This document shows, piece after piece, positions 5,606 through 42,614 of a stretch of 64,000 bases of DNA. Source of the DNA: Lepidodermella squamata. Its lineage: Eukaryota; Animalia; Gastrotricha. The position numbers and the translations under genes were made by a program. Below the pieces are notes generated by a model. That model searched no databases. It was not told the origin of the DNA and saw only the letters and a list, made by a program, of their open reading frames with translations. Numbering within the stretch: the stretch's first letter is position 1; the number at the start of each line of letters is the position of its first letter. The stretch spans positions 4,030,001 to 4,094,000 of the forward strand of contig JBLDXI010000009.1 in the NCBI GenBank assembly GCA_047495785.1, in the 5' to 3' direction.

Positions 5606-8600
5606 TCACTCGCAAGTTGGCGGAAGGTCGCTCCACGATCCATCTTCGCCGCAAGTGATAGAAGCTGGTCCCCGTAGCCTGAGGCCATTAAAGCAGGTGT
5701 AAAAGACCCGCTGGCCAATTTGATTGCCGCCACTAGCGAACCCGTTCGATATCTGAGGGACCTCTGAGGAAAAATAAAAGGTTTCATTGCTTTTTTTGTA
5801 ACAAGGATTCATTTAGTAATATACCGGAGCAGGATCTAACAGCGCTACACTGCTTAAATTCGCTTTCCCAAGACCCGCTAAGGCTGCAACGAACATCAAA
5901 TGATTTCGATCCATCTGCGGTGGTTCGCCCGGTGTTGCAAGTTATTGTCGCCTTAGAGCCAAAGAAAGCTGTGCCTCCCTCAGCCCAATCACTATTAGGT
6001 ACAGATCTCCACGAGCAAGTCCTTGATAGGGCAGCGTGGCCAAAATCAACATGAGCGCATGGCCAGTCACGGTATTCAATAGGGTGAATGCGTATGTACC
6101 GGGCAACAATGTTGTAAGCGAAAAGCGTGCAGATCTTAACGGAGACTGAGTCTGCATTACCATCGAACAACCGCATGCTATCTCCGTTGTAAATTATCGT
6201 CCACGTAAAGCCATCGATTGAGTAGGAAATTCCGAACTTGGTAACATAGTAGTTGTTGCGACGACAACCTGAAATTGCGTACCAGCCAACTGAGTGGACC
6301 AAACCAAGGTCGAGCTGTAACCAAGGCGTTTCCTTATCGCATTCAGCGGCTCGCCATGCCTCAACAGCATTAGAGCTGAAAGCTGATCTTTCAGGGTGGA
6401 ATTTACTGTCTGAATCCGAGCAAGAGGCACCGCATGAACCTGGCGATTTCTCCTTGTGCCAGCTTGATGCGACCCGGTTTTTGCTGCTTATATAGCTGAA
6501 CTCTTGCTCTCGGTCGCTTAGACAGGCGTATTGAACGTGAGCATACATCGAACAGGAAGGGCAGCTACTTAATCCCTTCCAGAATGCACTGGCAGGTACG
6601 TAACAGTTTTCTCGAGTGTTACACTCTTGAGAAACAGGGAGACTAATATCATCCCACTCACAGCCGTTATCAGTGTTAAAGCATTCGTTTCGCTTGCCAT
6701 CGCCACTGCAGGAGGCTCTTGACGACGGAGCAGTGTAGGGTGAGTAGAAATTGTCTGATCCGCAAGACGTCTCGCCTTGAAGGTTCATTCGGCCGAAATG
6801 GGCATCTAAGACTCTGATGCGGAAGCCATCATCGCATCTCAGGGCTAATTGGCTTCCGAAACAAGCTTGGGCAGTCTTCACCCGAGGACAGCGATCTGTA
6901 GTTCGAATTGGGCTTGTTGTTGTTGTAGTCGTAGTTGTAGTCGTAGTTCTTGTCGTTGTAGTTGGTGCCCGGGTTGACGGAGGAGGGCTTGGAGGAAGAG
7001 GAGGTAAGGTCCTAATAGGGGTACTTGGTGGGGGCCTTGGGGTGGTAGCAACGAATTCAGCGTAGCAATCCTCGTCAGTTTCACCGTCTAAGTCGTTATC
7101 AATACCATCACCGCAAAACTCTTCATCGACAGCTCCGTCGCAGTCGTTATCAACAAGATCGCCGATGATCATTCTGGTCCGTCTACATTCTTCAAGATTG
7201 GAAAATGAATCGTAAGAAAATATTAAAGATTAAAAAATTCACAAAAATACCTTCAAGATTTGTAATGCAGGCGCCAGTTGGATAAGCAATGGACTCACGA
7301 TCACCAGACCCGAAAATGTAGGCTTCAAATCTTACGTTGGGGTCATCATTTTCAATACGAAACTCGTTTTTATCATCCGGCAACTTGTATGAACCACCAA
7401 CCATGGCAGGGACTGAATTAGATCCCGTGCCCGGGATGTCATACCATCTTAAACCTTTCAGGTCATACGACTGTTGTGAATCTTTGGTCGTAAGCCTAAA
7501 ACTTTGGCGATACTCTCTGCCTACGATCAAAGTCATATATTTAGTGTAAGGGCTGGATACACCGATCGGAGTGACAAAGGTGTAGCCGAAGCCAAACTGA
7601 GCAGTTGGAATACAAATAGTCATAGAGGGATCTCCGGGAGTGGTCGTATCCTGCGGCATAGCGGAGTGAGAATACTGAACCGCTTGGAAAGGCTTATCAC
7701 GCTGCGACGAGAAACGCATCCATTCCGTAACCGATCGAGCCGGAAATCGAACAGACTCCTTCGCATCTAATGAAGTAGTATACGTTCTCCGCTCGCTTGA
7801 TTGCACTGTGACAACAGTGTTATCATACAGGGCCGTGATGACCCAATAGTCAAAGAGCCTCTCGGTGCGATTTGGCGTAGGCCAAGCTATGCAATCATTG
7901 CCCCAAGTGACCGTAGGGAAAAGCTGTTCGACCAAGTGGTCCCTGGATGGCGAAGTTCCAACATTTACGCGAGAATTACCCGACCAAACTGCAACATTTT
8001 CAGAAGAAGTAATCAATGTACCAGTAAGGTCGCATTCGTCTTGAATCTGTAGAACTTCCATCGGACGCAAGAGTACGTTCAAAATAGTTTCTCCATTGCC
8101 GTAATTCCGCCTGTTGTAGCTGACTTTACAAGCTGTATTTCCAGCACTTTTATCCTGATCCCAATCTCCCTCGTTTCTCGCCGGCGTTGAGGGGAGTGTT
8201 ATGTTTACGAAAGTGGGGATGGTTGTAGCAATAGCGAGTTCGCAATTATAGTTTGGCGGCCAAAAGCAAGATACGACGTATGACTTCCCAAGGGCAGTCG
8301 TTGGAAGGCCCAAAAACGCATCGGCGGTAAAATTCTCCTTGTTAACACCATAGAGCATGAAAAGCTGGTCTGATTTAAGGACCATGGCTTTCTTTTCGAT
8401 TGAAAATGAATTATCAGCGTCAAACATCTAAATTTTTTGAAGAGATAATTAGGATTGGTTCAGAATGAATTAAAGGCATGACGCACCTTCCAAGTATAAG
8501 GAATATATTGCGGGAGGATGTCGCGATATGGGAGAGAAATGGTTTTGTCTATTGGAGCATTTTCAGTTGGTGCGGGGTCTGACTTGAAGGTGATGGTGAT

Positions 8601-9120: not shown

Positions 9121-10147
9121 GTCTAAAGATAGTAAAGCAAAAAGCTGGTTTTAAACTCAAATTAAATTCTGGGGTAGATTCAAAATGCTGTGAGGATCTG
9201 AGGTACTTTTTCCTTCTAGTTCTGTAACACACTTTTGCCATTAGAGAGTTGGAAGCATCTAAAGGTCAATTAAGCCGCTTGAGGCCGGTAAAAAGCTTGC
9301 TCGTGCCATCAGTGTCATTACAAACTTTCAGCTTATTCAAAAAGCTGTTTATTTTCCACTCGCTTTCATGCTGACATCGGTCAGCAAACTTATGTAGGGT
9401 GAAGGTTAAGCTCCACGCAACCTGAACACGATTCACTAGTATTAATTGCAAATCGGTGGGCAGTGAATTCGTGTCAAGTACCCAGTAGCAGTATTATAAC
9501 CATGATAACTTTTTGATTACGTGCGTGATAAATTCGTTGGCGCTGCTGAAATGAAGAATGTTGTGGAAAAAGAACAAAATTTCACTCAGTTGTTCAGGTC
9601 AATCTCGAGTTTAGCCCTGCTGTAATTTGTTTTTCTTATTATGCCTTCATTTTACCCTTTTACGTGCACTATGCAAATGCTTTAGGCATGAAGCACGCAT
9701 TGAGTTCAACATTGGGAAAACCTCTCCCGGAGCCTGAGAGCGTCAGTTCCGTTTGATAGCATGTTTGCGGATTCAGTAAAACTGCTATATATAGCCGTCT
9801 CAAAGGTTACCTTGTTATTTTGACAAAAATCAACAAGTATTAAAAGCTGATAGCAGCTTCTAGTGGTTAATTTTGTTTCCATTCAATTACTCAGGTGTTA
9901 ACAACTGCACTATTTATTATCTAAAAAGTACACTCAGGAAACAAAGGAAAGAACATGTACATTGGACAAAACATCATAATTTTGATGTGTGCTATTTCTA
10001 ATGTCAATTTATGGCAGCTGCTTCGGGGATCATGAGATGCAAAACCAGAAAACCATTTCATTCAATCAGCACTTTGTAAATAATCATATAGGAAGTGCGT
10101 CAATTCAAGGCATCTTCGGTTTTCCTAACTAGCATTTGCCGTCTCGC

Positions 10148-13100: not shown

Positions 13101-13404
13101 TTCTTGCTCAAGCGCCTTGAAATTAAACCCCTTGCATTCGGCACTCCGCCTGCATCGCTCTGCACATTTTTTAAGGGTTCCGTCCCGTCCAGAAAGCAAG
13201 CCGCCGGATTGGATTCTGTCGTTATTGTTGGTACAGATTCCGTCTATTGCCGTGAACTCCATGATAGCTATAAAAAGATAAGTTTATAACCATTTTTTTG
13301 TTCATTTCGTTAGAATTACTCGGCCTAGTGGCGTCCGTTTTCCTCAACTGCCCAAAAGCAGCTGGTGCCAACGCAGCAGCGATGGCGAGAAAGCTGCACA
13401 GCAT
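10148..13404 (-). CDS. Secreted mosaic protein, paralogue C
   Basis: Signal exon MLCSFLAIAAALAPAAFG from 13404; 965-aa main ORF 13262-10365 carrying PAN through the first Sushi; last Sushi exon about 10308-10148 ending PTCA-stop. Confidence 0.88.
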
Positions 13405-19126: not shown

Positions 19127-22100
19127 TTATTTTCCATGATGAGCAAGTGCAGCGACGATTTCGGTCGCTAACTGCGCGACATTAGCCGCATCGTTCGCTA
19201 TCGATGCCGTATCGGTAGCAGCCGTGGAAGGCGGTCCTAACGAGGCAGTTGCCAGCTTTTCAATAGCCCGCACGAGTCCGTCTGAATTGAGGGCAGTTCG
19301 CCGAGCCGGGGCGCTATCAGGTTGCTGAACCAGTCTTCGAAGGGTTCGAAGCAGCGGTTTAGCCCTGGAAGGCGGCGGTGGGTTCGAGAAGTGCGGACCG
19401 CTGTTGCTAAGGACGCTGACCCAAACGTGAACGTTGTGCTCGCTGAGGGCGCCTGACAACTCGGCTGGGCCGTAAAGTTGGGCCAGAAGCGATAAAATAT
19501 TGGCGGCAGTATCGACCATCTCAGTATCGTCGATAACAAGCTGAAAAAAAAGGAATTTGAATTTATGGGAGAAAATTTAAATTTTTTAATAAAATTTACA
19601 AATTTCAGCTATCATCATTCAGCCGTAAAATTATATTGAAAATTTCAAAAATTAGTAAATAGTGCAAACTCATTTTAATTTCAACTTTTGTGGAAAATTT
19701 TTGAAAATCATATAAATTTCCTAATTTTTATGATATTAACAAAAATTACTTACCAAATTGACCAGAATGAAGTCTAGGGTTGCCAAGCCTTTCGCTGATT
19801 TCAACGCTTCCTCGGCCAGCTCCTGAGCACTCGATCCAAGGCCTTGCTGTCTAGCCTGAAAATTCGAGAAGAAATTAGAAAAAATACAATAAATGTTTTT
19901 AAAAAATTACCTGAATCGCTTTTCTTGCCGCTAAAGCGACATGTCGCAGCATATTATTGACAACAGAAAGCGACGCAAAAAGCGGCCTAGCAACCGGGTC
20001 CAAGGCGTTAGAAGAAATAGGCACGCCGCAGACACCCGCGGATTCCGTCAAAGTCGAGCACAAACCGGTGATTGTCTCAATGAAAATCGGCTGTAAAAAC
20101 GCGCCCAATTCAACGCTAGACTGCGCTAGAATCGCATCGATTATCTCCAGCAAGTGCTGAACGACCGACGTTTGCGGCTTGCGTTTATACCCGTCCAGGG
20201 TTGCAAGAATCACGCTGATCGTCGAGCTGGAATTCGATAGGGTTTTAACGATTCTCGGCGAAATTTGACAGGCCCCGAGTAGGAAAGACGCGGCCAGGGT
20301 CGGTAACGGGTCCGAGGCGACGAATAATCGGTCCAGGGTGGGTAGAATCGCCCTCAACAAATCGCTAACTCGCATGTTTTCAATACTTTTCTCCACCTTG
20401 AAAACAGCTGGTAACAAATCGGTTAGCAGCCTTAGTCCAGCTGCTTGTAACTCAATGTCTTGGGTATCGATGACTAATCGACTCAGTGGGGCTAGTAATG
20501 GGTAGTAAGACAACTGGCCGGTTGTTATTTGGTCGGATATCGCTGATTGGACGGTTGCTTCCAGGGCGCCTAGGACACCCTGGCGCAGGTCTTCGACGAC
20601 CACCATGACCGTGGTTGATGAGGCGACGGTCGATGAGGCGGATGACGTGGCCATGACTGCGTCGACTAGGGCGTTGTTCAGCTCGACCATGTCTGCGATG
20701 AACGCCGCGTCGATGACTTGCTGCCGGATGAGGGAGCAGCTGATCAGGTAGGCGACTACGGCTACTCCGGGCAGGGCGGCGTTGAGTTGCTTTGTTTGGG
20801 CGGTTGTTGGGTGCTGTTTCAGGGACACGTGGCGCAACGCTTCGATGGCTAGCTTGTTGAGTTTTGGAGGCAGGGCAGCTAAACTTGCGACGGCAGATGC
20901 TACACCGTGTTCTAAAATTTAAAAAATTAAATTAAATTAAATAATTGAAAAATTGATTAAAAATTTTAGATTTTTGTTTCGAAATAACGTGACGATATCG
21001 TACAGAAGGGGTGCAATCTAGTCGACTGCCACCGCAATTTGATTCAGAAAATTAAAAATAAATGGTTATTCTCAAAAATGAAACTTGAAGACACCGATAT
21101 AGTAAACCCTTCATTTGAGCTTAATTTTAATATAAACCGCCAAACGCTTCCCAAAAAGGCAAGGTGTAAGAGATAACGCCATTCTAATTTCTAATTTCCA
21201 ATAGCTGAAGGGCTAAATTGCCTCTATTTAATCTCTCATTATTTACCTAGTTTCAAGTATTTCATTGTCAAAGCCTATTTTGAGGTGACGTATGGGCAAC
21301 ATTGTTTGTTCACCTCGTAACTTCAAGATACTCCACTAAAACCGTAGGGTTGGGTAAAATAGGCTGTTTCATCAACAAAAGATTGAGAAAAACACAGATG
21401 TTACAGATCGCTCTTCCTTTATTTACTCACAGGGCATCACTTGAATTTAGCAGTCTCATCTAATAGGAACAAGCCGATCTGTTCTAGTCTAGTTCCTTCT
21501 CTGTGATGTCGAGAATCAACGTCGAAAAACTTATTGGTAGAATTTGTGTTCGTAGCCCTCTTGACCGCACCAAGTCGCACCAAGATTTCCAAGAGGTTGC
21601 GGTTCTCCATTAAATTGGCAGAATCGATTGCTGCAAACAAACAGGTGCCAAATCACGCAATTACTTTCTAACAGCCCTTCCAAAGTTTGAGGCTGGCCTC
21701 CAGAACTGCACCGTGGATTTACGCAAACTCCTTTCCCAACTCCTTTCAAATCTTTCTGGAGGAACTTGTGATAACCGGGTCGAAAATCACCAGACGCTAT
21801 GCGTGGAGGGCATTCAGCAAACGTTTTCGTGAGGGCAGCTAAATTTGGGAAGACTTGACCCTCCGAACGGCACCCGGCAGCATCGCATTTAATCCCGTTC
21901 GCTGATTCAGAGATTCTGTGCTCGGTTGTCTCTTTAACGAACCAGCATTCTTTCTTAAGCAGCAACTCCTTAACAGGTTGGGGTTCTTGACGCAAAGGGC
22001 AACTCGTATTGGTGCAAACGACCTGGTGATCTGCAATGCAGGGAGTTCTTTTGAGCAGCTCCAAAGCTTGAGGCACGCCTCCATAACGGCATCCCGTGTT

Positions 22101-25100
22101 TTGGCAAATCGCCTTACGCCTATCCGTCATACTGAAGCCTTAAAAAAATCTCTAAGTTGAATATAATTGAGGGGGAGCAGATGCAATAAACTCGAGTCGT
22201 AAAACTGAGACATCAGGTTAACAAGTTATCACGGAAAGTTTAGAGCAACCGAATAACTAGAGAAGGAAAATCAGCGATGTTATCAATGTAAACGCATGTG
22301 AAAGCCATTTCGGCTATTCGCAAATGATGATAATTGAAGAAATAAGTACATATAAGGAGAATCGCATAAATGTGTGTAAGAATTAAAATCAGAAGTGAGA
22401 CTACACTGCAGTTTACAAACGGCGCATGAAATCTGGAATGTTCCACGCCACGTGGACGCATTTCACGCGCAAGTAGTGAACAGTCGGCACGCTAGTATAT
22501 TTATGGTAACGACAGCCCACCTATCTCACACCAAATCCACGCTAGTGCATTTATGTTTAACGCCGGCAAAATTGTCCCAAATGAGGACGCGTAATAAGAA
22601 TGTAACGCTGTTTCAATACAGTAACGCTAGTATATTTATGCGTGCCGAGATGACTCGCCACGAGGCGTTACTCGTTTTGACGTGCAGCGGAAGAAATAAC
22701 GAGTGATAATAAGTACCGTGTTTTATCCAACACTATCCAACCTCAAATAATAGCCCCTCGAATAATAGCCACAAAAATTCATCCTAATATTGGGTCCAAA
22801 GGTTAATAATAGCCCACCTCGAATAGTAGCCACATTCCATATAATAATAGCAATACATCTAGTATGAGGGGAGGTGGCTAACGTGCCAGAAGGAAATTGA
22901 GACGTAGAGAAGAGAAGTGCGACAACGAGGAAGATAACAACAGTGCATTTAAGCTTAATTACAGCGACAAAGAGGAATATATTCAAGCAAAAAATGACTA
23001 AAATGTCTGTTGAAGTGATGATTTGACGTTTGAGCATGAATAATAGCCTGCCTTGAATAAAAGCCCCCTCGAATAATATCCCGATTTCTTTCACTACTTT
23101 TCGAGTTCGGAAAAAATAATATCCCAGGATACTATTCGATAAAATACGGTATACTGCAAAAAGGTGGCACCTATCAAGTTAAAAAGGGTGCCTGCTTTGA
23201 AATTGAAAAATCGTAAAAACATAGTCGTGCCCATTTGGACATACCTATAATCAATTATTTTAACTCAATTATTAAAGGATAGAAGTAAATAATATAGTAA
23301 TTTAATTTAATTAAGTTATCATGATTAAAGTAAATTATTGAATTATTGAATAATTTCGCAGGGGACAAGTAAGACAGGCCAAATACAACGAAAAAGTAAA
23401 GATATTACTGCGCGTGGTCAGACTTTTCAACAGTGACACCTCGGCGAATGAGGGTCAAATCAACCGTGACTTTTCATCAGTGACAACTTGTCGGTAGAAA
23501 ATGCACCCGTTCCAATAATTTTGATTCAATAAATAATTTTGAAAGCACTAATTTGAGATAATGCTATGAAAATTCGCCAAATATCGCCTCCAGAAGAAAA
23601 AGTAGGCCAGCAGGTAACAGGAGTGGAATCTTTTAGTGGACAACACTTTACACCGTAATACCTCGTGATCCTCACACGAATTCAATGACTCGCGGGTATT
23701 AGATATTAATCCACCAGAAAAAAATTCAAAAAGCTATTTCCGACTCCGAGTCTAAAGCATCCTACATCCGACGTCATGGTTCGATAATCAGTCACCAATG
23801 AGCTCAAACAATCGAAGCACTCTCTCGCGCATTATTTATTACAAATTATTGTAAAACCCAAATTCAACGTCAATCACAGAAGCTGTGAGGCTCGTTATGT
23901 CGAGTGCTAGCAACGCGTTCAAAGCATCTAGGATGTTTGTTTTTGAGTTCTTGTTCAGATTCGAAGACGGCCCCCGCCGACGGACACCTGAGATCAACGC
24001 ACGCCGTTCTATCGGCATTGAACACGTGAAGATCAGTCATTACACTGAGCACGCAAGTTAGCTCACGCAACAGCTCAACAGATCGCGGCTCTCCACGGAA
24101 AGGGCACAGCTCATTGGTGCAAACCGGCTGGTGAACAGTGCGCATCGTGCAGTAAGTGTTTTCTAACAAGTGCAACGGTTGAGGCCGGCCTTGGAAAGGG
24201 CAGCCTTGGTTACGGCAAATCGCGCGAGTTTGATGAGCCATACTAATTTTAAGCCTTAATTAAACTCTATTCGAAATAATTAAGGAGGATCACATTCTAT
24301 GAACCAGAGTCACCGAAATGAGGCATTAGGTAAAGAATTTTTCAGAGAATTAACCGAATAAAATTGTCCGAAATTAAGACGAATTTCTTACCCAAGTATT
24401 CGTGACGAGTGGCTGGCGAGATCGCTTTTTGAAAATCGCGTTCCAAATGCGAAGATAGCCTCGACTGGGTGCAATAGATCAGCATATCCGGGTTGTGTTT
24501 GACCACGATTCCAAAGCCGAGATAGCCCTTAGCTCGAACAATCGGCGATGTGTGTTCCATTTCAAACAGCAGCCCATCTAAAACCTCCTTGGACGAGGCC
24601 AATTTCGGTAGACGGCACAGAGCCACGCATAAAATGGTGATTAACGACTGGTGAATTCGAGGCGATTGGCTTGAAATAAGTGGGTCGAGAATTCCGGCCA
24701 GTGTGACGACTTCCATCAACGGTCCGACTAGGGCCGAATCGTGGAGTAAAATTCGACTGAGAGCGAGGGTGCATGAAATTTTGAGGGCGTCGTTGTTGCT
24801 ATTGCTGAAAATTGCCCAGAGTTGTTGCAGCGTCTCGCTGGTCAGAAATCGACGAAGTAAAGGATTTGCTGAAGCATTACGCGGGCAGGCCATAATATTT
24901 TCAATGATTTTAGCCGCATAGTGTCCAGTCGTAGGGCAATCACCTTCCTAGAATTACAAAAATGAATAAAATATTTAGGGAAAATCGTGGCTGGTGCAGT
25001 AATAGCTCTTTCCAAATTGGAAATTAGGAATTGTACAGTTCTTAACTCAATTTATCACGCTGGTCAATAATCAGAAACCCGCATCTCAAAATTCGCTAGG

Positions 25101-27696
25101 GATCAAAACTAATACATCCACCTCCGCGTTTTTCAGAGGTCGTTCTTTTTCGAAATATAAGTCCTATCTTCATGGCATGAGTTCAAACAGGGCATCAAAA
25201 AAATGGTACAGCTTAAAAAATATTTAATCGAAAAAATAGGCGATGGCTCAAACGAGTTGCAAATAAAAAATATGAAGTCGTGAGAAATCGATCGATGCCA
25301 AGTGAAAAATAACCTTATTTGCTTAGACCAAAAAAGCAAAATAGCGGAAAAATGAATGCAGCGTAAAGACTCGAACCACAACCTTCAAAAACCAGTAACA
25401 AGAGAAGAAAAATCCGCCAAAGAGTAATAGCTAAAGTAAATGTCCCTATAGCGCAATAATGATGCAACTTCAGTCCAAGTGGCCAATTACCCTTAATTAT
25501 GACCCCGGTAAATTATTTTACTGATTCTTTTCAAATAAAGCTGTTTTTCGATTTATCCCATTATTATTAGTCTTGGAGATATCACTTCTAGCCCCACCGA
25601 CGAAGAAATTTTTTACCTTGAGACATCGAAATACCAAGGTGGCCACAGAGCTGTGAATGTCATTGCCAGTCGCAATAGGGGTGCACCGAACCACAGCGTA
25701 GACTAACTCGCCGAAAGTAGGCAAAATGACGAGTCTCATCGACCTTTGATGGTAGGCATCGCGAAGCATTTCGCCGACGCTATTGCAAGAAAGAACCAGA
25801 TCGGCAACTGCCTTTGAGTCGTCCCGAATGCCCGTGGGAGATAGACGACTGCAAGCCACAGCCACGAGATGAAGCAATCGCTGTTTGCTGAAAATTTCAA
25901 AATTATTTTCAAAAAATTAGCTCATAAAGTCAACGTACTTATCAACAGTTTGATTAGACTCTTTGATGATTTTCAGCACTGAAGATAGCCCATTCAAAGC
26001 TACAAAGGCGTCGCTAGCATGCGGACTCGAGGCGAATAGCGAGGCGCAATAATTTATATGATTGACCCGCTTCGCCGAAATCGGTCCTTTCTCATTCGCG
26101 CCACTGATATGCTCAAGCAAACTGGCAACATATCTCGTTCGATCTCGATCAGCCATTACGCCTAGCTTATCCGCTGTTGTCTGGGCAACAGGCAGCATTT
26201 TCGCGTCAAACTTGGCCGTTGCGTTGTTGTTATTCGACAACGGAGTTGTTTTAACGATTCTTTGATTATCAACGATTGAAGTTACGGTTAAATCGGTTTC
26301 GTGGAATAGCTGCAAATTGCCCCATTCTGCCATTTCGTCGTCTCCACCGCAGCCTAGGAGAGGCGCAGCAGCTGCGGCTTGAACAGCGGCCTGAACCGCA
26401 TGTTGCGGCGTTCTGGCTGTTCGAGTCTCGACAGGGCCTGAGTCCAACGCCTGGCACGGGGTTAGTCGCCCGGCTGTACCTGGTCTACTGGTGGCTAGAG
26501 AAGCCCCAGCAATCAATAACGCGGCGCGACCGCAGGCAGTTGGCGGGCGATTTGCGTTGAAGTCAACAATTCGGTTCACACTACCGGCTAGAGTCGAATT
26601 TCGGCCTTCACTTTCGCCGGCTGTGACCACCATGTTAGACGCCCTGGGTGTCTCATCCCCACTGCCCCCGGATACGTCGTGTTGCTCTTCATCGCCGCTC
26701 ATCGTGGCTGTCTCACTGTCCAGCAGGGTATGCTGCCCGTCAGTAGCCAGTGTAGCTAGACGATCGCCGAACGCAGGGTGCGACAAAATATCAGACCAAG
26801 TATAGCGTTTTAAAGGGTCTGGAACCAGCAGTCCGGTAACTAGATCGCGGAAATTTTCCGAGGGTGGTGTTCGGTTTTTCGAGCCTTCATTCCAATGCAG
26901 GGCTGAGTTAGACTGGGGCGGTGATCCAGTGAATAAATGGTAGAGCATGACTCCGAATGAGTACAGATCAGATGGAACCGACCAATCATACGTCAACCCA
27001 AGCTCAGGAGCTCGATAAGCTAGAAGAAATTCGTTTAAATATGGTAACATAAAGAATAAATTTCATTACCATCATTCACTTCAGGCGCTGCTAGGTCATA
27101 ATCCTCGCCTTCTTCGCAGAATTGGTGTTTCAACACGTCGACCAGATTTTCCCCATCTAGTTTTGATATTCCGAAATCGGCGAGTTTAAATATGCCAACG
27201 CTATCCAGTAGGACGCGAGATGGTCGCAATGGGCCGAACAAGATGCCAAGGGAGTGGCAATGGTACAAGCCAGATGCGACGCTGCTCGCGAATCGCAGGG
27301 TTACATCCTCGGGTAGATAGCCGTCTTGCTGAATTATTTTCTCTAATGTTCCACCCGAGCACAGCTCAACCACCAACCTGTAAATAAATTTGAATTGATC
27401 AATGAACTAGGATCTTCTTTAAACCTACCACAGATGGTTGTTAGTCTCATACCACTCGAAGAATTTAACGATGTTTTTGTGGGTTATCTCATAAGTTAAT
27501 CGAACCTGTCAAAATTAATTGATAAATCTAAGGACTTGATATAAAAACAAGTGCTCACCCTATTGGTAACTTCAGGCCGGCGGCATTTCTCGATGCAATA
27601 GATGGAGACAAAACTTATTTCTCCCTTCTTGCGCCCCTTGTACACGATTGTATTAGTGTACTTGTCGGTTTCCTCATAAAGCACATAATTCTCCAT
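19127..27696 (-). CDS. ULK4: Serine/threonine pseudokinase ULK4 (N-terminal pseudokinase, C-terminal HEAT/ARM repeats)
   Basis: The spliced N-terminus MENYVLYEE..VYKGRKKG..CIEKCRRPEVTNR|VRLTYEITHKNIVKFFEWYETNNHLW|LVVELCSGG is diagnostic of ULK4. Exons about 27696-27559, 27505-27429, 27377-27069, 27019-25938, 25887-25617, 24948-24392, 20911-19911, 19855-19753 and 19540-19127. Confidence 0.92.
21531..22130 (-). CDS. Intron-nested 199-aa Cys/His-repeat protein (5 repeats of C-x4-C-x16-19-C-x3-13-H), family not recognised
   Basis: Intronless ATG ORF with periodic CxNxxC...GxPQxLxxL...C...H repeats; paralogue at 23870-24241; AATAAA at 21418-21423 (minus); AG acceptors immediately before the ATG. 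Confidence 0.8.
   Translation of the reverse strand: MTDRRKAICQNTGCRYGGVPQALELLKRTPCIADHQVVCTNTSCPLRQEPQPVKELLLKKECWFVKETTEHRISESANGIKCDAAGCRSEGQVFPNLAALTKTFAECPPRIASGDFRPGYHKFLQKDLKGVGKGVCVNPRCSSGGQPQTLEGLLESNCVIWHLFVCSNRFCQFNGEPQPLGNLGATWCGQEGYEHKFYQ
22716..23149. mobile_element. Non-autonomous Tc1/mariner-superfamily (Tc2/pogo-like) MITE
   Basis: TA flanks at 22714-22715 and 23150-23151. Including the TA, the left end TACCGTGTTTTATCCAACACTATCC matches the reverse complement of the right end TACCGTATTTTATCGAATAGTATCC at 21/25. Internal repeated GAATAATAGCC motif. Confidence 0.75.
23870..24241 (-). CDS. Intron-nested 123-aa Cys/His-repeat protein (3 repeats), paralogue of 21531-22130
   Basis: AICRNQGCPFQGRPQPLHLLENTYC aligns with AICQNTGCRYGGVPQALELLKRTPC; AATAAA at 23835-23840 (minus); homologous upstream non-coding sequence. 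Confidence 0.78.
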   Translation of the reverse strand: MAHQTRAICRNQGCPFQGRPQPLHLLENTYCTMRTVHQPVCTNELCPFRGEPRSVELLRELTCVLSVMTDLHVFNADRTACVDLRCPSAGAVFESEQELKNKHPRCFERVASTRHNEPHSFCD

Positions 27697-31733: not shown

Positions 31734-34700
31734 TCAAATGTCCTTGGCTATGTGAGCCATGCGTTGAAAGTGCGTCGCCTCGGCCGAGCGTTGCTGCATT
31801 GTCGCCAGATCGGTCATTTCAGCAACGCGACCCGCGTCCATGACCAGGACACGGTCGCAGCGGCTCGTCGGCGAGACAATCGCCTCAACGCGATGCACGA
31901 TCGTTATGATTGTCCGCTTGTGAGCTTCGACGTTCAACGTCGCCTGGATGCGGTTCTCCGTCTCGGCGTCGATACTCGCCGTCGCCTCGTCTAGGATCAA
32001 AATCGGCGAATCGCGAACTAGTGCGCGGGCTAGGCACAGCAACTGCCGTTCGCCGGTCGAAAAACGCACGTCATTCGACGAAATTGGCATCTCCAACGCA
32101 GCGGGCGAGTTGTTCTGCTTGCCCGACGTCATCGACTGGAAGAGGGTAGGGTGACCCCACCTTGACCCCATATTTGACCCTAGGAACAAGTCATTACCAC
32201 CCCCGGCCATTGATTCAGTCGACTGGTAGTAACGCGACGCTTTTTCTTGAATTTTACTCTTCATCGCACACCGCTCTAATGCCGCCCATAACTCGTCGTC
32301 TTTCCGCTCGTTATAAGGGTCGAGATTCGACCGAATAGTACCCGAAAATAGGAAAGGATCCTGCGGGACGACGGAAATGCATTTTCTCAACCGTTTTAAT
32401 GGGACATTCGCAATATCAACGCCGTCGATCAAAATCCGGCCTTTGTTGATAGCGTAGAGGCGGGTTAAAACAGCGGCGATTGAGGACTTGCCAGACCCAG
32501 ACCGGCCGACTACGGCCAGAAATTCGCGAGAATGAACGTCGAAACTAACACTATCCAACGCTAATTGGCTAGTGCCACCCTCTTCATCCTGGCCGTAACA
32601 CAACGAGACATTTTCAAATGAAACAGCCCCCTTCGACGGCCAATTCGCAGTCAATTCAACAGTTTTAGGCAGCAAAGCTTCCGCCTCAACCTCTGTTGTG
32701 AGCGACTTTCTAGTCTGGGGTGATTTCAACTCATTTTTCGTCGCATTTCCGTCAGATTCAAGGTCTTCCCTCGGCATCCGATCTTGGAAAGTTGAAATTC
32801 GCTCAACTGCTACGAAGCTGGTTTCAGCGTTCAAAAACATGCGAGTGGCGACCTGTAAAATTCCGCCCATTTCAATGACCAATGACAGGGCCAGGCCGGC
32901 AAAAGCCGGGGCGAGGTGGTTGCGCAGGACGAGAATTAGAGTGCCGGCTACTCCGATGAGTAGATTGACTAACACATCAAGCCGCCAACTCATCCAACGG
33001 CCGCTGAATTGCAGCAGCAACATAACGGCTGATGTTCGATTGATTAAGGCGGCTGCTCGATTCAGAAACATTTGCGTACGCCCGAATGAGGCGATAATCG
33101 GTGCACCGGCTACGATGGAAGCCAACAAACTGAGTAGCGGCTGGATAGTGTAGGCCTCAACGCGGCGCAAATCGCGTAGTGCAACTTGAGCGAGGCGAAA
33201 CACGAAGAAGCAGAAAACAATCATGACGAGGCAGCAGATTAAAAACCACGGCATCACGAATGAAACAGTTATACTCGCCGTAATTAAGACTGACAGGTTT
33301 GATAGCAGGAATTCAACGGAGGCTGGCAGTTTTGCTGTTACTGTACCAAAACATGAAATTATGATTGATTATTGTTGTAAATATAGTAATATTCGCACTT
33401 ACGTTCGTCAATGTCTTTGGCGAAACGCGTTATGATGGTGCCAGTTTTTGTTCGTTCGAAAAAGTGAAGAGGTGAGGACAGCAGACTCGATAGCAACGAT
33501 TTGTGCATATTATTGGAAGCCCGAAGAGCAAACTATACGTAAACGGGAAATCATACACAACTATTAATCAACAGTTACATAATTAATACCTTACCGAATT
33601 GGGGTATCAATTTTTTTTACATAATTTATCATAAAGTTAGCGTCCCTGAGATTTCAATAACTTTAAAATTCAACTATTTATTCATTCATTCGACGCTTTC
33701 GCCAATAAAAAAAATATTTCGTTGGTTATTAAATCATTTATTACTGATTAGCTGCCACATCTATAATCTATAAGGACTAATTCTCATGAATTACGGAAAA
33801 TATTGGGAGCAAGTTTGTCAAAACATGATTGCATGAGGCCATTTTTTGGGGCAAATTCAAGCAAATTTTGAATTTTCGGCGAAATTTGCAATGAAATTCA
33901 CAGAAATTTGAGCCGTTTTGGCCGTTTTGGGGCGAATTGATTATTTGGCGTAAAAAACGGATTCATCTGAAACCATCGAATCTACAGAAAATTACTACCA
34001 GCTACAAATAGGGCTCCTTAGGTAGCAAAATAGTGGAAAACCACCAAAATAACTGAAAATTGGTCGAAATGAGGCCGATGCTTCAACTACTAAACAATGT
34101 TGCTGGGAGTGAAAAGCCCTTTCTAGGCATAATTTACTGCGGGGAGTAATCAGAGTGAACCATTCTTCCGACCCAAGTTACATTTTAACATTTAAAGGAA
34201 AATTTGGAAAATATTAAGGCACGCATATAATGGAAATATTATCTTTATGACTTACCATAGCAACAAAGCAGCTTTTGATAATGGCAGAGACCAAAACACC
34301 GAAAGCACAGCAAATGTAAACAGTCGCATAGAAGTGAACGGATGCATTCGTCGAAAGATCATTATTATTGCTATTCGCCATAGCAGTAACCGTCGCGTTC
34401 ATCGAACTCGAAAAATTCGCCGAAAACCCATCGGCAACTAGCGTCCCATTATTGGCGGATGTAGCCCCGCCGCCTTGTTTCAACCAGTACGCGAGCCAGT
34501 ATTTCGTAAAGGCGACCAAGCCATGCGTGAAAACGTAGCCGAGAAACACGAACAGTATCAAAATCGGGCGACGGGCGGCGTTAGCGTACGTCCTGTAAAC
34601 AGAAAACGCAACTCGACCGCGTTTCGCCGCATCGATATTCGACTCGTCCAAATCAGGCCGAGATCGGAACAACGACTCGCCAACAGGCTGCTCAACCTCC

Positions 34701-37700
34701 GCCTCGCCATTTTCATCCGCACTTTCTTCAATTGTTAGGACCTTAGCGCTACCCGGCGACTTCGCGCTGCTGGTTTCGTTGGAATTCATCGTATTTTTCC
34801 GGCTAGTTTTCGCCAAAAACACCTTAGCCCCGACTGCTGCGGTTAGCGAATCGACATGGCCGACGAATTCAGGGTTGTTAGGCCGGTGGTTTAGTGACAG
34901 TGAGACATCAATAGGCGGCTCGTCGGTGACTAAGCCACCCACGTGTTGGCTGACCAACGAAGTAATTCGACCCAATTGAAACGCCTCTTCCTCCTCCTCA
35001 GGCACATCGAAAAACTGCTCTTCCTCCAGACCATTGGCGAAAGATTGTTTCCGTTGCCGGTAGAAACTCTGGACCAGGCTTAAATACTCCCCACCAGCCT
35101 TCGACATCAACTCGCTGTGAGTCCCAGATTCTGTCACAGTGCCGTCTCTCATTACGATGATTCGGTCGCATTTCATCAAAAACTCAAGTCGATGCGATAC
35201 GAAAACTACGGTGGTAGAGGTGTTACGCAACGGCATCAGAGCGTCTTCAAAAATTTGCCGACTTAGCTGGACATCAATTGCGCTCAACGGGTCGTCTAGG
35301 AGTAACAAATCAGCCTTGGCGTATAAGGCCCGGGCTAGGCTGAGTCGTTGCCGCTGTCCGCCAGATAAATTCGCGCCATATTCCGACAGCTCAGTCATAT
35401 CACCATAGTCCATAGCCCCGAGATCACGCGATAGCCCGCAATTTTCAACAACTGAATGATAGAAGTCGGCATCATAAGGCTTTCCGAATAAGATGTTTTC
35501 ACGAACTGAGCCATTATATAGCCAAGCGTCTTGCATTACAATCGAGTAAGTCGTGTTCTTAGCCAGGGCTATCGACCCGGATGACACATCTAACCGGCCT
35601 AAAATCGCGTGTAGTAGGGTAGATTTTCCTGAACCAACCCGGCCGCAAACTCCGATGAACTGGCCTCGTTTAATCGACAGATTCAACCCTTTCAGGGCTA
35701 ATGGGTTGCGTTTTTCTGACGAGCAGGGCGTGGCAGGGTGTTCAGACCCGGTGTCGCTGTCATGCGCAACAGCCAATAGATTCGCGTTGACTGGCGCGTC
35801 GGTATCCGATGTCGGCGCCTCGCTGTTCATCTCTTCGGTTTTTTCAACTGATTTGCTCTCAACAATTGGTTTATTCCGGTTATTTCGGCTCCTTTCCCTC
35901 GTTCTCTGATGGCGGCGTTGCGGTTTTCGCAGGCCTTTCGGTGCTTTGGGATAGCTAGCGGTTAAATCACTGATTTCGACGATGGGTTCAGAATCAGCTG
36001 GTAACACAGGCAACGGGGTGAGCTCGGGTAAGTAAAACACGCGGCTCAATCGATAGGCGGCCACTCGTGAATCGTTGAAGCCTTTCATACAGTTCGGAAT
36101 TTGATGGACAAATTGACGAGCCGCAGCCTAAAAAAATCGGAAATTTCAATAAAGTTTCAAAATTCAATCCAGTACTCACCCAAAGGCCTACGAAAGCAAA
36201 CGCTTGAGCAGCATCTAGTCGATTGCCGAGCAGGATGTGGGGTAGAAAGACGCTAACAGATGCGAGTAACGGTACGGTGAAAACGAGCGATACGCTGAGC
36301 GACGCTAGAATCCAGCTTATTCTCAAGCATCTCACCTCCTGTCGCCAAATGCGAAGTATTCTCTTGTAGAAAAACGTCTCCAAGCCGAGGAATTTGACTA
36401 GTCTAACAGATGAAAGCAACTCGCGCATAATATCAAGCCGCTGATCGGCTAAATGCTGTGTTTTACGTCGATATCGCATGATTATGCCCGAAATGAAGAA
36501 CTCAACGGGTATGTAGACGACGAAAACAGCCGTGGCCATCAGTGACCACGGGCCAACGATGAAGAAGCCGCAGACTGATACGGCGATGACCATAACAATC
36601 GCGCTGAACAGCGTCGTCAAGTGAGTTGGGAAGTCTAGGAAAGTCCTCGAGTCGTTTGCAAATATGTTCGTGATTGTAGGGCGGATTGAAAGCAGAGATT
36701 TGGACTTTAAAAGCTTGTGTAGGCATAGAAATAAAACTGCACCACGTAGGCGAACACCTGAATTGGAAAAATTCAAGTAAAAACATATTCGATAATTCAA
36801 TAATCCATCGCTAATCAGAAAAATCCAATATTTTCCATAAATCAAATTATGTCTTAAATTTCTATATAAATTTTTTTATTTGGACAATTTTAAGAATTTA
36901 CAAAAATATAAAAAAATTTTTTGATAGAAAATAGGGGTCCTCAAGAGTTAATAAAAATCACAAACCGGCAATTCCGCCGACGCAGAAAGCTTGAGACCAT
37001 AGAACTGATTTGCATAGAAGAAGAGCAACCATGCCAGCAAGGGCGCTGATGCCGATGAACATATCGACGGAACCGTTTTCGATCTCTCTGATCAGCGTGC
37101 GAAGACCAAAAATTGCACTCGCCAATACGACGACAAGCGTCGCCAACCGCAGAAATAGAATGCCGAATAATGTGAGGAATTGGAAGCGCAAAATCGCCCA
37201 AACGAGGTTTAGATGCGGCTCTTTCGCTTCTTTCTGAGGTTTTCGCTTGGCGTCGGTTATCGACTGAGTGCTGAGTTGAGGCTCCGGTGTTTTACCGTTC
37301 GCTTCAACGGGTCGACTTGCCGGCGATCCATCGAGTTGACCAACATGCTGACGCTCAATTTCAGCTTTTACACATCTCTCCCACTGAAAAATAGAAATAA
37401 TTCAGCAATAATTCTCATTTACAAAAACGGAAAATATTTTAGGTAGAGAAAACTTTGCTAGAAATGAGGCTAAAAACGATAGAATACTAAACCAATTTTT
37501 AGAAGAAAATTTAACCCGATTCCCAATACAATAAACGGGCAAGATTACTTTTCTTGCGCGCTAGGGTTCTATATTCTGTCATCCAAATTGAATAAAAGAA
37601 AAATTTGATAAACGCCAAAAATATCACAACTGATTTTTGCTTATCTTACAGTCATTTTTTCAAAAGATAAATTGTTTACCCACCTTGTGAAGGACGACAT

Positions 37701-38218: not shown

Positions 38219-41200
38219 TCAAGTTTTACAAACTTCAAGACTAGGAAAATCGGTGGCGTTTGCGAAAACAAAAGCTATTTTAGTGCGCTTTTTCGGCGCA
38301 CTTGACGCCGCCACTTCGTTGTTGCTGTTTTCAACAGGTTTCGGCGGTAATTGCTTCTTCGGTTGCGGTTTTTCCGCCGGCTTCTGATCGTGGTGATGGC
38401 CCGAACAGCACGAGTCGTGGCAGCTGGACGGCGCCGGTGGTTCGACCAGGCTCAGCTGGCTAGCGGCCGGTAGCTCTGACATTAGGATATTGAGAACGAT
38501 CTGAATGCGTTTAATTGTCATCGCAATCGGTAGAATCGGGTTGGCGGGCCGGGGTAACGGCGTCGGAATAGCGAACAAGGTTTGCCATTTCAGTTGAGCC
38601 CCGCTGAGGCTCTCCAATCCGCGTTTGGCGTGGTGGAAAAACAGAAACGCTTGTTGGTAGCATTTAGCAGGGTTGCTACAGTCTCGGAATATCTGTACAA
38701 ACACCAAATATGATTCATTACAAGGTATGAAATGCAATATTGCATCAGATAGACCGAAATGGAGGAAACTCGAATTTTAATAAAAATAAATGATAAAAAA
38801 TAGTTTGTTTCTATTTTTAGCTAAGGGGCTCATGGGCTTTTAAAAGATTGTGGCTTTAGAATAAACGGTTAAATGAGAAAATGCAGCCCACTTGATTGGA
38901 ATGAAAAAATCGATTGCCGGGCTAAGTATTTGCTCGAATGAGACGAAGGTTGATACGGAAAACCCATATAACGTCCACTAGATGTCAATTTCTCTTGTGT
39001 GTCCCAAGAATTTAAAGCAGAAACAAAATCGTCCCAATTTTACAATAAATTACAAAAAATCGAATCGATGAGGCATAATAATTGGAATTATCCTTCCATA
39101 CGGTAAAATAACGATTAAATCATTAGCCGGTACATTTTCTTAAAATGACCTCAAATACGTAGTTCATTCGACTACTCGTAGTAATTAAGATAATAATAAG
39201 GCGATAAGGCTATACTCGTATAAAAAAAACTTGCCTGTTCAAATACGCGATGATACATTTCGTAGGAGAAGTACGGCGGACGGGTCACGCTGGCAAACGG
39301 CGAGAAGCGATAAAAGTAACGCCGACTTTCGTCGTCATATTTCGACGTTTTCGGCGTCGGAATTCGCCCGTCTAAAATCAAACCATGGCTCAGGAAAAAG
39401 TAGGCCATGCACAGCGTGTAGTACGTCTGTGACAGGCGCATCAACTCTTCGAGGAAAATCGCGCTGGGTGGTGGCGCGCTGTTCGCGGCCTGCTTCGCGT
39501 TTTTCGCCTTGTTTTTACCGGATTTCGGCGGGGCACATGACATCATGACAATGGCGTGCGCGTTTTCAATGAATGCGACGTAGTATCGCATGAAATGCTC
39601 GGCCAATCCCGCGAATACGTACCGGTATTCATGAGCTGAGTAGATTCCGAGTTGAAAGCCAAGCAGTACATAGCGCATTTGCATACACGTAGTCAAGAAA
39701 GTGGTGAGCAATTCTGTCAATAAAAATGGAGTTATCAAGATCAAGTTGAAAAATGAGTAAAACTAGAACAAAAAATAGTGATTCAATATAGGTATGTACG
39801 CTTTTCCTTGAAGATAAAACAAGAAACTTTTGGAAAATGCATCATTATTTCATCAAAAGATAAGCACTATGAGTCTCATCTCAGATGAATCATCAAATTA
39901 TATTGTTTAGGAATTTACATTCCGTGAATCATGGTAACTCAAATCTTTCAATGATTGCTAAATAGCCTAAATATCCTGAGAATTAAGCAGTATCAATATT
40001 TTGATCAAAGTTCCTTAAACTGAAAAATTGAACCAAAATAGCTAACCTAAACGAGGCTTTTCAGCAGCCGGGCTCGCTCCAGGTTGAGACGCCAGTACAC
40101 TGTCAACAGTTTCAGCCTGATCAGTGATCATGCACATTTGATCCAGCAGTTTTCCAATTTTGTCACGCTGGCGCGACAAATTAAGGTAGTGCAGCTGTAT
40201 GTACGAAATAAGGGTGCACGTCAAATTTGTCAGGAAGACTTGGCAGGTCGCCCGCGCTTCAGCACTCATTTGCTGCAGAGATTTCTGCGAAAAATCGCTG
40301 CAGTTCAGAAAGACTTGGCACATGTGCGGCACAATACCAGCCGATTCATTCACCTCGCCCTTGCCAGTTGAGCTCGTCGCTTCTCCCGCGCTATTTATGA
40401 TCGTAGTGAGCAAATCTCGGCCAATCAGGCGAACCAACACATTCGGCGCTCTCGCAGTGAAAGAAACGAGGTAATCGAGGAAATCCCACGGATCATAGCG
40501 CAAATCAGGTTGCATAAAGAGCAACTGTAAATCATCCACGAATTTGACCAAAAATGCAATTGAATCCCGTCTTGACTTGATGTAAGGTGCCCTGGGTAAG
40601 GTTGGCGGTAACAGATGCTGATTAGCCAGTGGATCGAACCCCATGATCGTAGGATAGTCAAAGCGCGTGGCGGTCGAAGATTCTGGTTCAGGTGAACCAT
40701 TTTTTGGCTTGCACCCGATGTCAACGCTTCCTTTCATCGACTCCAGTAATTGCTTCAGAGATGCGAAAGACTTGGTCAACCAATCAGCATCTCGTTCATA
40801 TTGAGAGATGCTGGTGTAATTTCCACAGGTGTTCAGGCATTGCACCAGCAGTCGAAAACAGGAAATTCGATTAATGACAAACTTGAAATTCGGATTCGTT
40901 CCAACTTTTGACGCAAGAGATGCTTCAACTTCTTTGGCATGAGTTAGAGCTTCGACATCAGAAATATCCGTAGCTAAATTAAACGACAACTGATGAACGC
41001 TAACAAAATCCTCCTCGTAACAAACGCGACTTGAGCCGGTGTGAATAATCACCCAATTTACAAATTTGAGCACCAAGACAACAAAAGCATGAAGTGCTTG
41101 ATCTTGAACTTTCTTGTGATCATGGAGGTAAAGATTAGTGAACACTGTTTGCAAAATGTTTTGCCCGTCAAGCCAAGTAATCAGTGTTGCTATGGTTTCG

Positions 41201-41466
41201 TCCATTATACCAATCAATTCTTCAATTTCAAGGTTGTCAGTCTTAACTACGCCAGATCGTATTCCTTCTTCGAAAGTGAGAATTTCTCGTCCCAGGCTGA
41301 AAAGCGCAGCTGTTGAGTCCATTTTTGGATCCATTATTTCAATCGCCGACATTGCATCCACCAAGCCGAATTTTTCATCGCTGTACAATTCCCCTTCGGC
41401 GAGCGAAGCACAGGCTTCTTTGAAGCAACCAGTGATGTCAATCCACGACGACTCTTCATCCGACAT
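38219..41466 (-). CDS. NAA35: N-alpha-acetyltransferase 35, NatC auxiliary subunit (Mak10)
   Basis: FGLVDAMSAIEIMDPKMD, TWLDGQNILQTVFTNLY, YEEDF, GFDPLANQHLLPPTLPR, RQRDK, RYFYRFSPF; exons about 41466-40047, 39712-39231 and 38692-38219. Confidence 0.95.
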
Positions 41467-41524
41467 TCTTAAAGCTCACTTTAAAAATCTAGAAAGCAGG
41501 AAAGAATTAGACATCAACGTGTAA

Positions 41525-42139: not shown

Positions 42140-42614
42140 TTAATCAATAACTAAGCCGGTGATAAACAAGTTACATCAAGCAAAAAAAACCCAGAGCAAG
42201 TTGAATGGAATTGAAAGAAACAGTTGTAAGATACAATGAGGTGAGGTGATCTCAGGTTTCAGGTAATAACAGGGGAATGCATAATTATTCAGAGTCTCGA
42301 AATGCCAACTGCTCGAATTTCAATTCCAAGTTCCAAGGGAGAAACGATTTGGTTCTTCTCGACACACAAGATATCCCACGACACGCAACAAACCCGGCAT
42401 TTTTTGTTAACGATCCCCATTGGGAACACTTTATTAGGGGTGTAGCCCCCTCGTCGAACTAATAAAATAATTTTTAAATTTTAACGCAGCTCAACATTTT
42501 TGATTACTTATGTCTGGTATATATTACCTGGATAATATCAAAAATTGTTAATGTCAATAATTAATGAAGGCATGCAGATGACGTATTATTACACTTTCAT
42601 CGTCTTTCTCGCGT

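Follow-up and report, generated by a model that had tools for sequence, protein, structure and literature searches.

The locus considered here raises the question of what is encoded by two open reading frames (ORFs) of 199 and 123 amino acids (aa), ORF199 and ORF123, that lie within one intron of a ULK4-like gene in the gastrotrich Lepidodermella squamata, and whether they are genes in their own right. The ULK4-like gene is carried on the minus strand of the window, by which we mean the whole 64-kb stretch of contig JBLDXI010000009.1 that was analysed. We consider it rather likely that ORF199 and ORF123 are genuine nested genes, intronless and arisen by tandem duplication, which encode zinc-finger-like modules of no described family and are expressed independently of ULK4. 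All coordinates of the gene analysis refer to the 64-kb window, and the scope of whole-genome searches was the 121.2-Mb assembly of 151 contigs (the published assembly is described as 122 Mb in 157 contigs; PMC11660948). Introns, nested genes, trans-splicing and zinc have 0 occurrences each in the L. squamata genome paper (PMC11660948).

A preliminary description of the locus had placed two intronless, paralogous, same-strand ORFs in a 3480-nt ULK4 intron, and its coordinates, lengths and orientation proved correct, both ORFs lying wholly within the intron and on the host strand. The ORFs and their repeats are as follows.

21531–22130, minus strand: ORF199, ATG-initiated intronless gene candidate, 199 aa, five Cys3-His repeats, 15 Cys, 5 His, 22 kDa, isoelectric point 8.5
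22020–22112, minus strand: ORF199 repeat 1, C-x4-C-x16-C-x3-H
21912–22022, minus strand: ORF199 repeat 2, C-x4-C-x17-C-x8-H
21756–21893, minus strand: ORF199 repeat 3, C-x4-C-x19-C-x13-H
21639–21731, minus strand: ORF199 repeat 4, C-x4-C-x16-C-x3-H
21540–21641, minus strand: ORF199 repeat 5, C-x4-C-x16-C-x6-H
23870–24241, minus strand: ORF123, ATG-initiated intronless gene candidate, 123 aa, three Cys3-His repeats, 10 Cys, 7 His, 14 kDa, isoelectric point 7.0
24125–24223, minus strand: ORF123 repeat 1, C-x4-C-x16-C-x5-H
24017–24127, minus strand: ORF123 repeat 2, C-x4-C-x16-C-x8-H
23891–24007, minus strand: ORF123 repeat 3, C-x4-C-x18-C-x8-H

The five and three repeats described earlier could all be read, the pattern C-x4-C-x16-19-C-x3-13-H holds in eight of eight, and there are none elsewhere in the window: the regular expression C-x4-C-x15-20-C-x3-13-H gave eight matches in the six-frame translation, all of them in ORF199 or ORF123, and shuffled windows gave 0–3 scattered matches (mean about 1.2). 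The consensus of the eight repeats is xVCxNxxCPxxGxPQPLELLxxTxC-x(3-13)-H-x-F, with C, C, L, C and H invariant, and every Cys (15) and His (5) of ORF199 falls in its five repeats. Repeats 1–2 and 4–5 abut tightly and are joined by His-x3-Cys, the loops of repeat 3 are longer, and the resemblance of ORF199 repeats 4–5 to repeats 1–2 that had been pointed out amounts to 39% aa identity. ORF199 lies far in the tail of the ORF lengths found in the shuffled intron (95th percentile 119 aa, maximum 204). Hydropathy over 9-aa stretches peaks at 0.93 and 0.26 within the N-terminal 35 aa of the two ORFs; neither N-terminus is hydrophobic and, judged by hydropathy alone, a signal peptide is not apparent in either, in line with the preliminary description. 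Leftovers of repeats 4–5 were looked for downstream of ORF123 and none was found.

The host intron and the exons that flank it were delimited by searching the host gene exon by exon, by reference.

20912–24391, minus strand: ULK4-like intron, 3480 nt, phase 1, GT-AG (sequence read; exon alignment to contig L053, see below)
24392–24893, minus strand: ULK4-like exon 5' of the intron, ending in ...ATRHEYL plus the G of the split GAA codon (ORF; 68% aa identity to the ULK4 of a relative)
19902–20911, minus strand: ULK4-like exon 3' of the intron, HEAT_ULK4 repeats (PF23606, E 6e-16; 64–81% aa identity to the relative)

The intron starts with GTAAG, ends with TTTTAG and splits a GAA codon after base 1 (TTG G / AA CAC), which sets it in phase 1. 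A word search with the downstream ULK4 exon led to two proteins from ENA metagenomes, with identities of 64% and 82%, of an animal related to the organism of the window; they are borne by the long contigs ERZ23486787 scaffold_1183 (L053, 34 kb) and ERZ27333047 k141_580635 (L054, 18.6 kb), and the order of ULK4 followed by IgGFc-binding/F5_8C/SUEL-lectin genes is common to these contigs and the window. Both ULK4 exons align to L053, at 9225–9725 and 9729–9947, in one frame and with a single GAA codon between them; across the intron site the unspliced ULK4 of the relative reads ...K-H-E-Y-L-E-H-G-V-A..., and the splice predicted for the window gives the same L-E-H. Since the relative's ULK4 runs through the site in frame, the borders of the window intron are exact and the 3480-nt intron is lineage-specific, being absent at that codon in the related organism. 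The relative's ULK4 appears to have a short intron of its own (~55 nt, GTAAAA...TTTCAG, L053 9948–10000) after ...YAFI, at a point ~70 codons downstream of the 3.5-kb intron where the coding sequence of the window is continuous (about 20690–20700). The alignment indicates that, between these two related gastrotrich-like genomes, introns have been gained or lost on either side. The genes upstream of ULK4 differ, being EMP24, NatB_MDM20 and VPS13 in the relative versus an ABC transporter and NAA35 in the window.

Candidate signals for separate expression were read around both ORFs.

22131–22236, minus strand: ORF199 upstream region, with a T-rich tract, TTAAGGCTT (22135–22143) and a CAG acceptor-like site 1 nt before the ATG
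24242–24349, minus strand: ORF123 upstream region, homologous to that of ORF199, with TTAAGGCTT (24251–24259) and a TAG acceptor-like site 1 nt before the ATG
21418–21423, minus strand: AATAAA, 108 nt past the ORF199 stop codon
23835–23840, minus strand: AATAAA, 30 nt past the ORF123 stop codon

As in a nested intronic gene, the ORFs, their upstream regions and the AATAAA signals are all inside the exactly bordered intron. Similarity between the copies begins ~108 nt before the ATG and carries on into the coding sequence (66% over 286 nt), so that the upstream region is conserved no less than the coding one. An AG-T stands before both ATGs (ttcAG/tATG and attAG/tATG), and in ORF199 the AG is preceded by the T-rich tract. 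Additionally, the GC content of the two ORFs is 0.49 and 0.53, against 0.36 in the remaining intron and 0.52 in the ULK4 exons, and their codon log-odds of 0.11 and 0.105 are the sole positive values of the six frames and fall within the range of verified exons (0.10–0.21). These features resemble those of nested intronic genes in trans-splicing animals, which are likewise small, intronless and on the strand of the host, with an AG just before the ATG and a poly(A) signal of their own; the present case differs in that a related species lacks the host intron, that the nested genes are orphan and that trans-splicing at the two AG sites is putative. A role of the ORFs as alternative ULK4 exons was considered and rejected, the phase-1 donor joined to either AG leading, when read by hand, into another frame and an early stop. 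An unpaired (T)AG close to the ATG is also seen at the starts of other genes in the window: tttag directly adjoins the ATG at 8427, and the distance to the ATG is 5 nt for tatag (ATG at 13262), 11 nt for ttag (ATG at 42139) and 22 nt for tctag (ATG at 41466); the sites lie within 8428–8432, 13263–13272, 42140–42160 and 41467–41497, respectively. Further, positions 22489–22640 hold three copies of a 17-nt motif (ACGCTAGT[AT/GC]ATTTATG, plus strand), 50 and 85 nt apart and 360–510 nt upstream of ORF199, in a stretch that is otherwise unique in the genome.

Constraint was gauged from the divergence between the paralogues. ORF199 and ORF123 share 40% aa identity over 112 aligned codons, and their nucleotide divergence is 44.6%, yet of the nine Cys and two His common to both none has been lost, and all indels between the ORFs are in frame (multiples of three). 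The earlier statement that only about half of the residues of repeat 1 match while every Cys and His position is retained is borne out by an identity of 52% in that repeat. Neutral simulations run at the observed divergence (n=5000) kept a mean of 2.1 of the nine Cys and never all nine, remained free of stops with P = 0.018, as the observed pair is, and gave an aa identity of 0.28 ± 0.03 versus the 0.40 observed.

No described family accommodates the repeat. Neither ORF nor any repeat matched at threshold in Pfam, NCBIfam or PHROGs, and profiles of the repeat and of the double finger found PDB sequences at E > 0.5 only. The sole recurrent Pfam signal is TRAF2_zf on the C-x-N-x-x-C knuckle, at 13.8 bits versus a cut-off of 27 (E 0.006–0.05) in two of the eight repeats; TFIIIA_zf-C2H2 reached E 0.015 and 15.7 bits, also versus 27, over 12 residues. 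For comparison, TRAF fingers (n=5, from one RING-TRAF gene) and LIM domains (n=8) were taken from the same genome. TRAF-type fingers are C-C-H-C fingers with the spacing C-x2-6-C-x11-12-H-x3-5-C. The TRAF/SIAH fingers (PF02176 zf-TRAF, PF21341 TRAF2_zf) are like the ORF repeats in forming tandem arrays (of ~27–30-residue fingers), in having a C-x-N-x-x-C style knuckle and in a short helix with a conserved Leu, and the distance from the second to the last Cys, 15–18 residues in the TRAF fingers of this genome, compares with 16–19 (C2–C3) in the repeats, the third Cys of which sits at the position of the fourth (last) TRAF ligand. In contrast, the ORF repeats are C-C-C-H and not C-C-H-C, have an invariant Leu at the TRAF His position and are accompanied by neither RING nor TRAF-C, and hhalign of the repeat profile with the same-genome TRAF fingers gave a probability of 2.5% over 14 columns; with a score below the gathering threshold and a match confined to the knuckle, a TRAF-type assignment was rejected. 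The gene that supplied TRAF fingers is of interest in itself, being a 319-aa single-exon ORF with a RING and five TRAF-type fingers at G000:C9:1611473–1612432 (L026 1279–2238, minus strand); a whole-genome zf-TRAF scan gave at least three matching stretches, and the TRAF repertoire looks small.

Fingers of the CCCH type are broadly defined as C-x4-15-C-x4-6-C-x3-H. Both the classical form (PF00642, C-x7-8-C-x4-5-C-x3-H) and the Nab2 type (C-x5-C-x4-6-C-x3-H) share with the ORF repeats the ligand set and order, often occur in tandem and end in the C-x3-H that is also seen in ORF199 repeats 1 and 4, and a single Nab2 chain was matched weakly at the knuckle (E 1.9). They differ in the middle spacer, which is 4–6 residues in these fingers and 16–19 with a predicted helix in the ORF repeats, and in the last spacer, which is 3–13 in the latter. 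The CCCH/C3H1 spacing is found in none of the eight repeats, and there is no such Pfam match at E <= 1 for the proteins or at E <= 10 for single repeats. The claim in the preliminary description that the spacing departs from known fingers is therefore clear for CCCH, and its TRAF part needs qualifying by the sub-threshold TRAF2_zf knuckle. LIM domains follow C-x2-C-x16-23-H-x2-C-x2-C-x2-C-x16-21-C-x2-(C/H/D). ORF199 repeats 1–2 and 4–5 resemble LIM (PF00412) as abutted double fingers with 16–19-residue spacers between ligand pairs, and differ from both LIM and LYAR in having C-x4-C instead of C-x2-C knuckles; there is no LIM match in Pfam, and hhalign of the double-finger alignment with the eight LIM domains gave 1.6%. 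A20 fingers (PF01754) have the spacing C-x2-4-C-x11-C-x2-C, from which the repeats differ, and no repeat matched this model at E <= 10, although it finds the genome's own A20 fingers elsewhere. For the C2H2 finger, C-x2-4-C-x12-H-x3-5-H, the sub-threshold TFIIIA_zf-C2H2 match was the only one. At the sequence level it is plausible that the module lies outside all described zinc-finger families.

Relatives of the two proteins were sought widely. An exact look-up of both in public assemblies, a word-based protein search with ORF199 and a scan of metagenome contigs with the back-translated pattern and with exact 29-mers gave no match, and a protein-language-model atlas gave no usable one. The two-gene profile, run against 1.84 billion representative proteins, returned three matches, all repetitive and of low complexity; they do not contain the C-x4-C pattern and were rejected as compositional artefacts. 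Within the protein and metagenome data covered here, ORF199 and ORF123 are orphan, gastrotrichs being barely sampled. What had been called a new repeat family holds up in that neither a family match nor a relative was found, but 'family' is too large a word for a single pair of genes from one locus of one genome.

Several observations weigh against the view that ORF199 and ORF123 are functional genes with a new module. No ORF with the Cys3-His finger is present on L053 or L054 (regular expression and tblastn), and there is no orthologue in the sole related organism at hand. The length of ORF123 alone is unremarkable against the shuffled intron, and a control ORF in a repeat element within the intron has a codon score of 0.088, which means that the codon test discriminates weakly. 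The 9-mer TTAAGGCTT, exactly kept upstream of both ORFs, could be due to chance (about 0.3 by our estimate). The proteins are in none of the protein collections searched; since ULK4 of the same species is also missing from these collections, absence there is uninformative on expression, and a neighbouring 204-aa ORF, used as a control look-up for RNA data, had no match either. The AlphaFold models are of low confidence (predicted local distance difference test, pLDDT, 47 and 57) and leave fold and metal site without structural support. Per repeat they predict a strand, the knuckle, a strand or bridge and a 5–6-residue helix over L-E-L-L, followed by the third Cys and the His (pLDDT 47–57). Searches with these models gave nothing at E <= 5 in Foldseek against PDB, best Z values of 3.3 and 2.3 in VIA-align against about 48,000 chains, and TM scores below 0.4 in the ESM Atlas shape search; the top structural row, the N-terminal tandem finger of LYAR (1wjv), had Z 2.3 and a root-mean-square deviation of 3.4 Å over 52 residues, which is not significant. 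Since the models are poor, these blank searches are no evidence of a new fold, and the structural check proposed at the outset (AlphaFold with Foldseek) leaves a new fold unsupported.

The substitution pattern likewise weighs against simple purifying selection. By the Nei–Gojobori method the ratio of non-synonymous to synonymous substitution rates (dN/dS) is 0.88 between the genes and 0.73–0.94 for the double-finger comparisons, and it is at third codon positions that conservation is highest rather than lowest; with third positions not the most diverged and dN/dS in this range, there is no sign of constraint outside the scaffold. The purifying selection originally suggested is consequently supported by the simulations for the Cys/His scaffold and not for the proteins overall, and of the outcome that the preliminary description had named as speaking against it, dN/dS near 1 together with lack of transcription, the dN/dS half was obtained. 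Our reading is that the Cys/His scaffold is under strong constraint, other positions being free or diversifying. A fixed scaffold amid free positions is in keeping with a binding protein under conflict, but also with weakly selected young genes. Taken with these reservations, ORF199 and ORF123 are probably fast-evolving orphan genes with an unclassified zinc-finger-like module.

We suggest that a tandem duplication produced the two genes, in host orientation, within the lineage-specific ULK4 intron. Their products would be soluble, non-secreted proteins of five or three tandem modules of about 30–45 residues, each of which may bind one zinc via three Cys and one His. Each module would run from a C-x-N-x-x-C-P knuckle through a short P-Q-P-L-E-L-L helix to C...H, with repeats 1–2 and 4–5 packed as double fingers, and the proteins may function as small adaptors that bind nucleic acid or protein, combining a fixed metal scaffold with fast-changing surfaces. 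The mRNAs would be independent of ULK4, probably through spliced-leader trans-splicing at the AG one base before the ATG, and their 3' ends may be formed by polyadenylation at the AATAAA past each stop. A bolder version, which we put forward tentatively, is that module duplication in Gastrotricha has given a new zinc-finger type (C-x4-C-x16-19-C-x3-13-H), carried by two trans-spliced genes born in a lineage-new intron; the surface residues of the module would change at or above the neutral rate around a fixed metal scaffold, suggesting recognition under conflict.

The intron was also considered as a product of mobile elements. Two of its stretches recur elsewhere in the genome, one of ~440 bp and one of 93 bp, and the genes and the intron ends are unique.

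22714–23152: interspersed repeat of ~440 bp, like a miniature inverted-repeat transposable element (MITE), between the two genes and not of the gene family; >40 copies, 72–91% identity, many contigs
23413–23505: 93-bp repeat

No further copies of ORF199 or ORF123 were found in the 121-Mb genome with both proteins, the repeat hidden Markov model and a degenerate 35-nt DNA motif, which gave chance stop-interrupted matches only. The intron contains no transposase, integrase, reverse transcriptase or capsid ORFs, and neither terminal inverted repeats nor a target duplication were seen at its borders. With two copies in 121 Mb and no PHROG or Pfam match, a transposon or viral accessory ORF was rejected, and neither this nor a strong Pfam match, both named in the preliminary description as grounds for abandoning its view, was found. 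A retrocopy was rejected (no intron-bearing parent in the genome, no poly(A) remnant), as was an introner (intron ends unique in the genome). Short reverse-strand matches at the ends of ~440-bp copies (C32:639134–639164, C3:3757781–3757807) suggest terminal inverted repeats, and a 123-aa ORF inside this repeat (22723–23094) is probably spurious. Elsewhere the 93-bp repeat occurs as inverted pairs 0.4–0.9 kb apart (C9:2455779/2456210, C10:908951/909849, C11:1462281/1462684, C9:1295875/1296353) that resemble the paired termini of a small DNA element; the window has a single arm, with an internal 26-nt direct repeat (23421–23446, 23468–23493).

Four other explanations have to be set against this proposal. 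One accepts the genes and derives the module from a very diverged beta-beta-alpha/TRAF-SIAH-like (or C2H2-like) finger, a ligand-shifted variant in which the helix His became Leu and a downstream His was recruited. The only database signals, the TRAF2_zf knuckle in two of eight repeats and TFIIIA_zf-C2H2, point in this direction, as do the spacing (C2 to last Cys of 15–18 in same-genome TRAF fingers, equal to the C2–C3 distance of 16–19), the Leu that in our reading of the alignments is invariant at the TRAF His position, and the strand–knuckle–strand–short helix prediction for each repeat; however, the matches amount to 13.8–15.7 bits versus a gathering score of 27 and span 8–12 residues only, hhalign finds 2.5% over 14 columns, the ligand order is C-C-C-H and not C-C-H-C, and there is no structural match, and we regard such an ancestry as unlikely. 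It also seems improbable that the ORFs are what is left of a duplicated segment that landed in a young intron or grew with it, unexpressed or in decay and of no present function, their Cys pattern retained by descent. Under neutral drift ~2 of 9 Cys would remain and a stop would arise in 98% of cases, the indels all have lengths divisible by three, the ORFs form exon-like GC islands within an AT-rich intron, and each copy has retained its upstream DNA and poly(A) signal; this has to be balanced against a dN/dS of about 0.9, a shorter ORF123 without repeats 4–5, the lack of relatives, and a lineage-specific intron that holds repeat-element insertions.

That a mobile element or virus brought the ORFs into ULK4 as its cargo or accessory genes, the insertion later being spliced out as an intron, is in our view distinctly unlikely: the related organism is indeed without an intron at this codon, the intron does hold the MITE-like repeat and part of another repeat, and the genes are orphans, but the enzymes and capsid proteins of such elements are missing (no transposase, integrase, reverse transcriptase or capsid ORF), intron ends and genes are unique, the borders show no terminal inverted repeats or target duplication, PHROG and Pfam matches are lacking, and codon usage is like that of host exons. 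Least probable of all, and very doubtful indeed, are secreted, disulfide-bonded Cys-rich peptides (toxins or antimicrobials). Such peptides typically have a conserved Cys framework, loops that are hypervariable and a dN/dS close to 1, but the N-termini of the two proteins are not hydrophobic, the 150 nt upstream of ORF123 are too short for a signal-peptide exon, three Cys per repeat give ORF199 an odd number (15), and His is conserved along with Cys.

If ORF199 and ORF123 are expressed and bind zinc, they would add a zinc-finger spacing class without detectable relatives, found in a phylum for which molecular data are very scarce, and would constitute a dated case of young genes in a young intron, given that a related species lacks the intron; as such they would bear on the origin of orphan and nested genes in compact, trans-splicing genomes. 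Their general importance is limited by their being a two-gene, one-species orphan set of gene candidates. In addition, two same-strand poly(A) signals inside the host intron raise the question of ULK4 transcript read-through.

Among the neighbouring features of the window, one belongs to the host gene and the others include a long interspersed nuclear element (LINE).

25920–27050, minus strand: protein kinase C-lobe (Pkinase) exon of the ULK4-like gene (domain match)
43955–47218: LINE, a 1087-aa ORF with endonuclease and reverse-transcriptase domains

The LINE adjoins NAA35 (40042–41466) and the ABC transporter gene (31734–36088).

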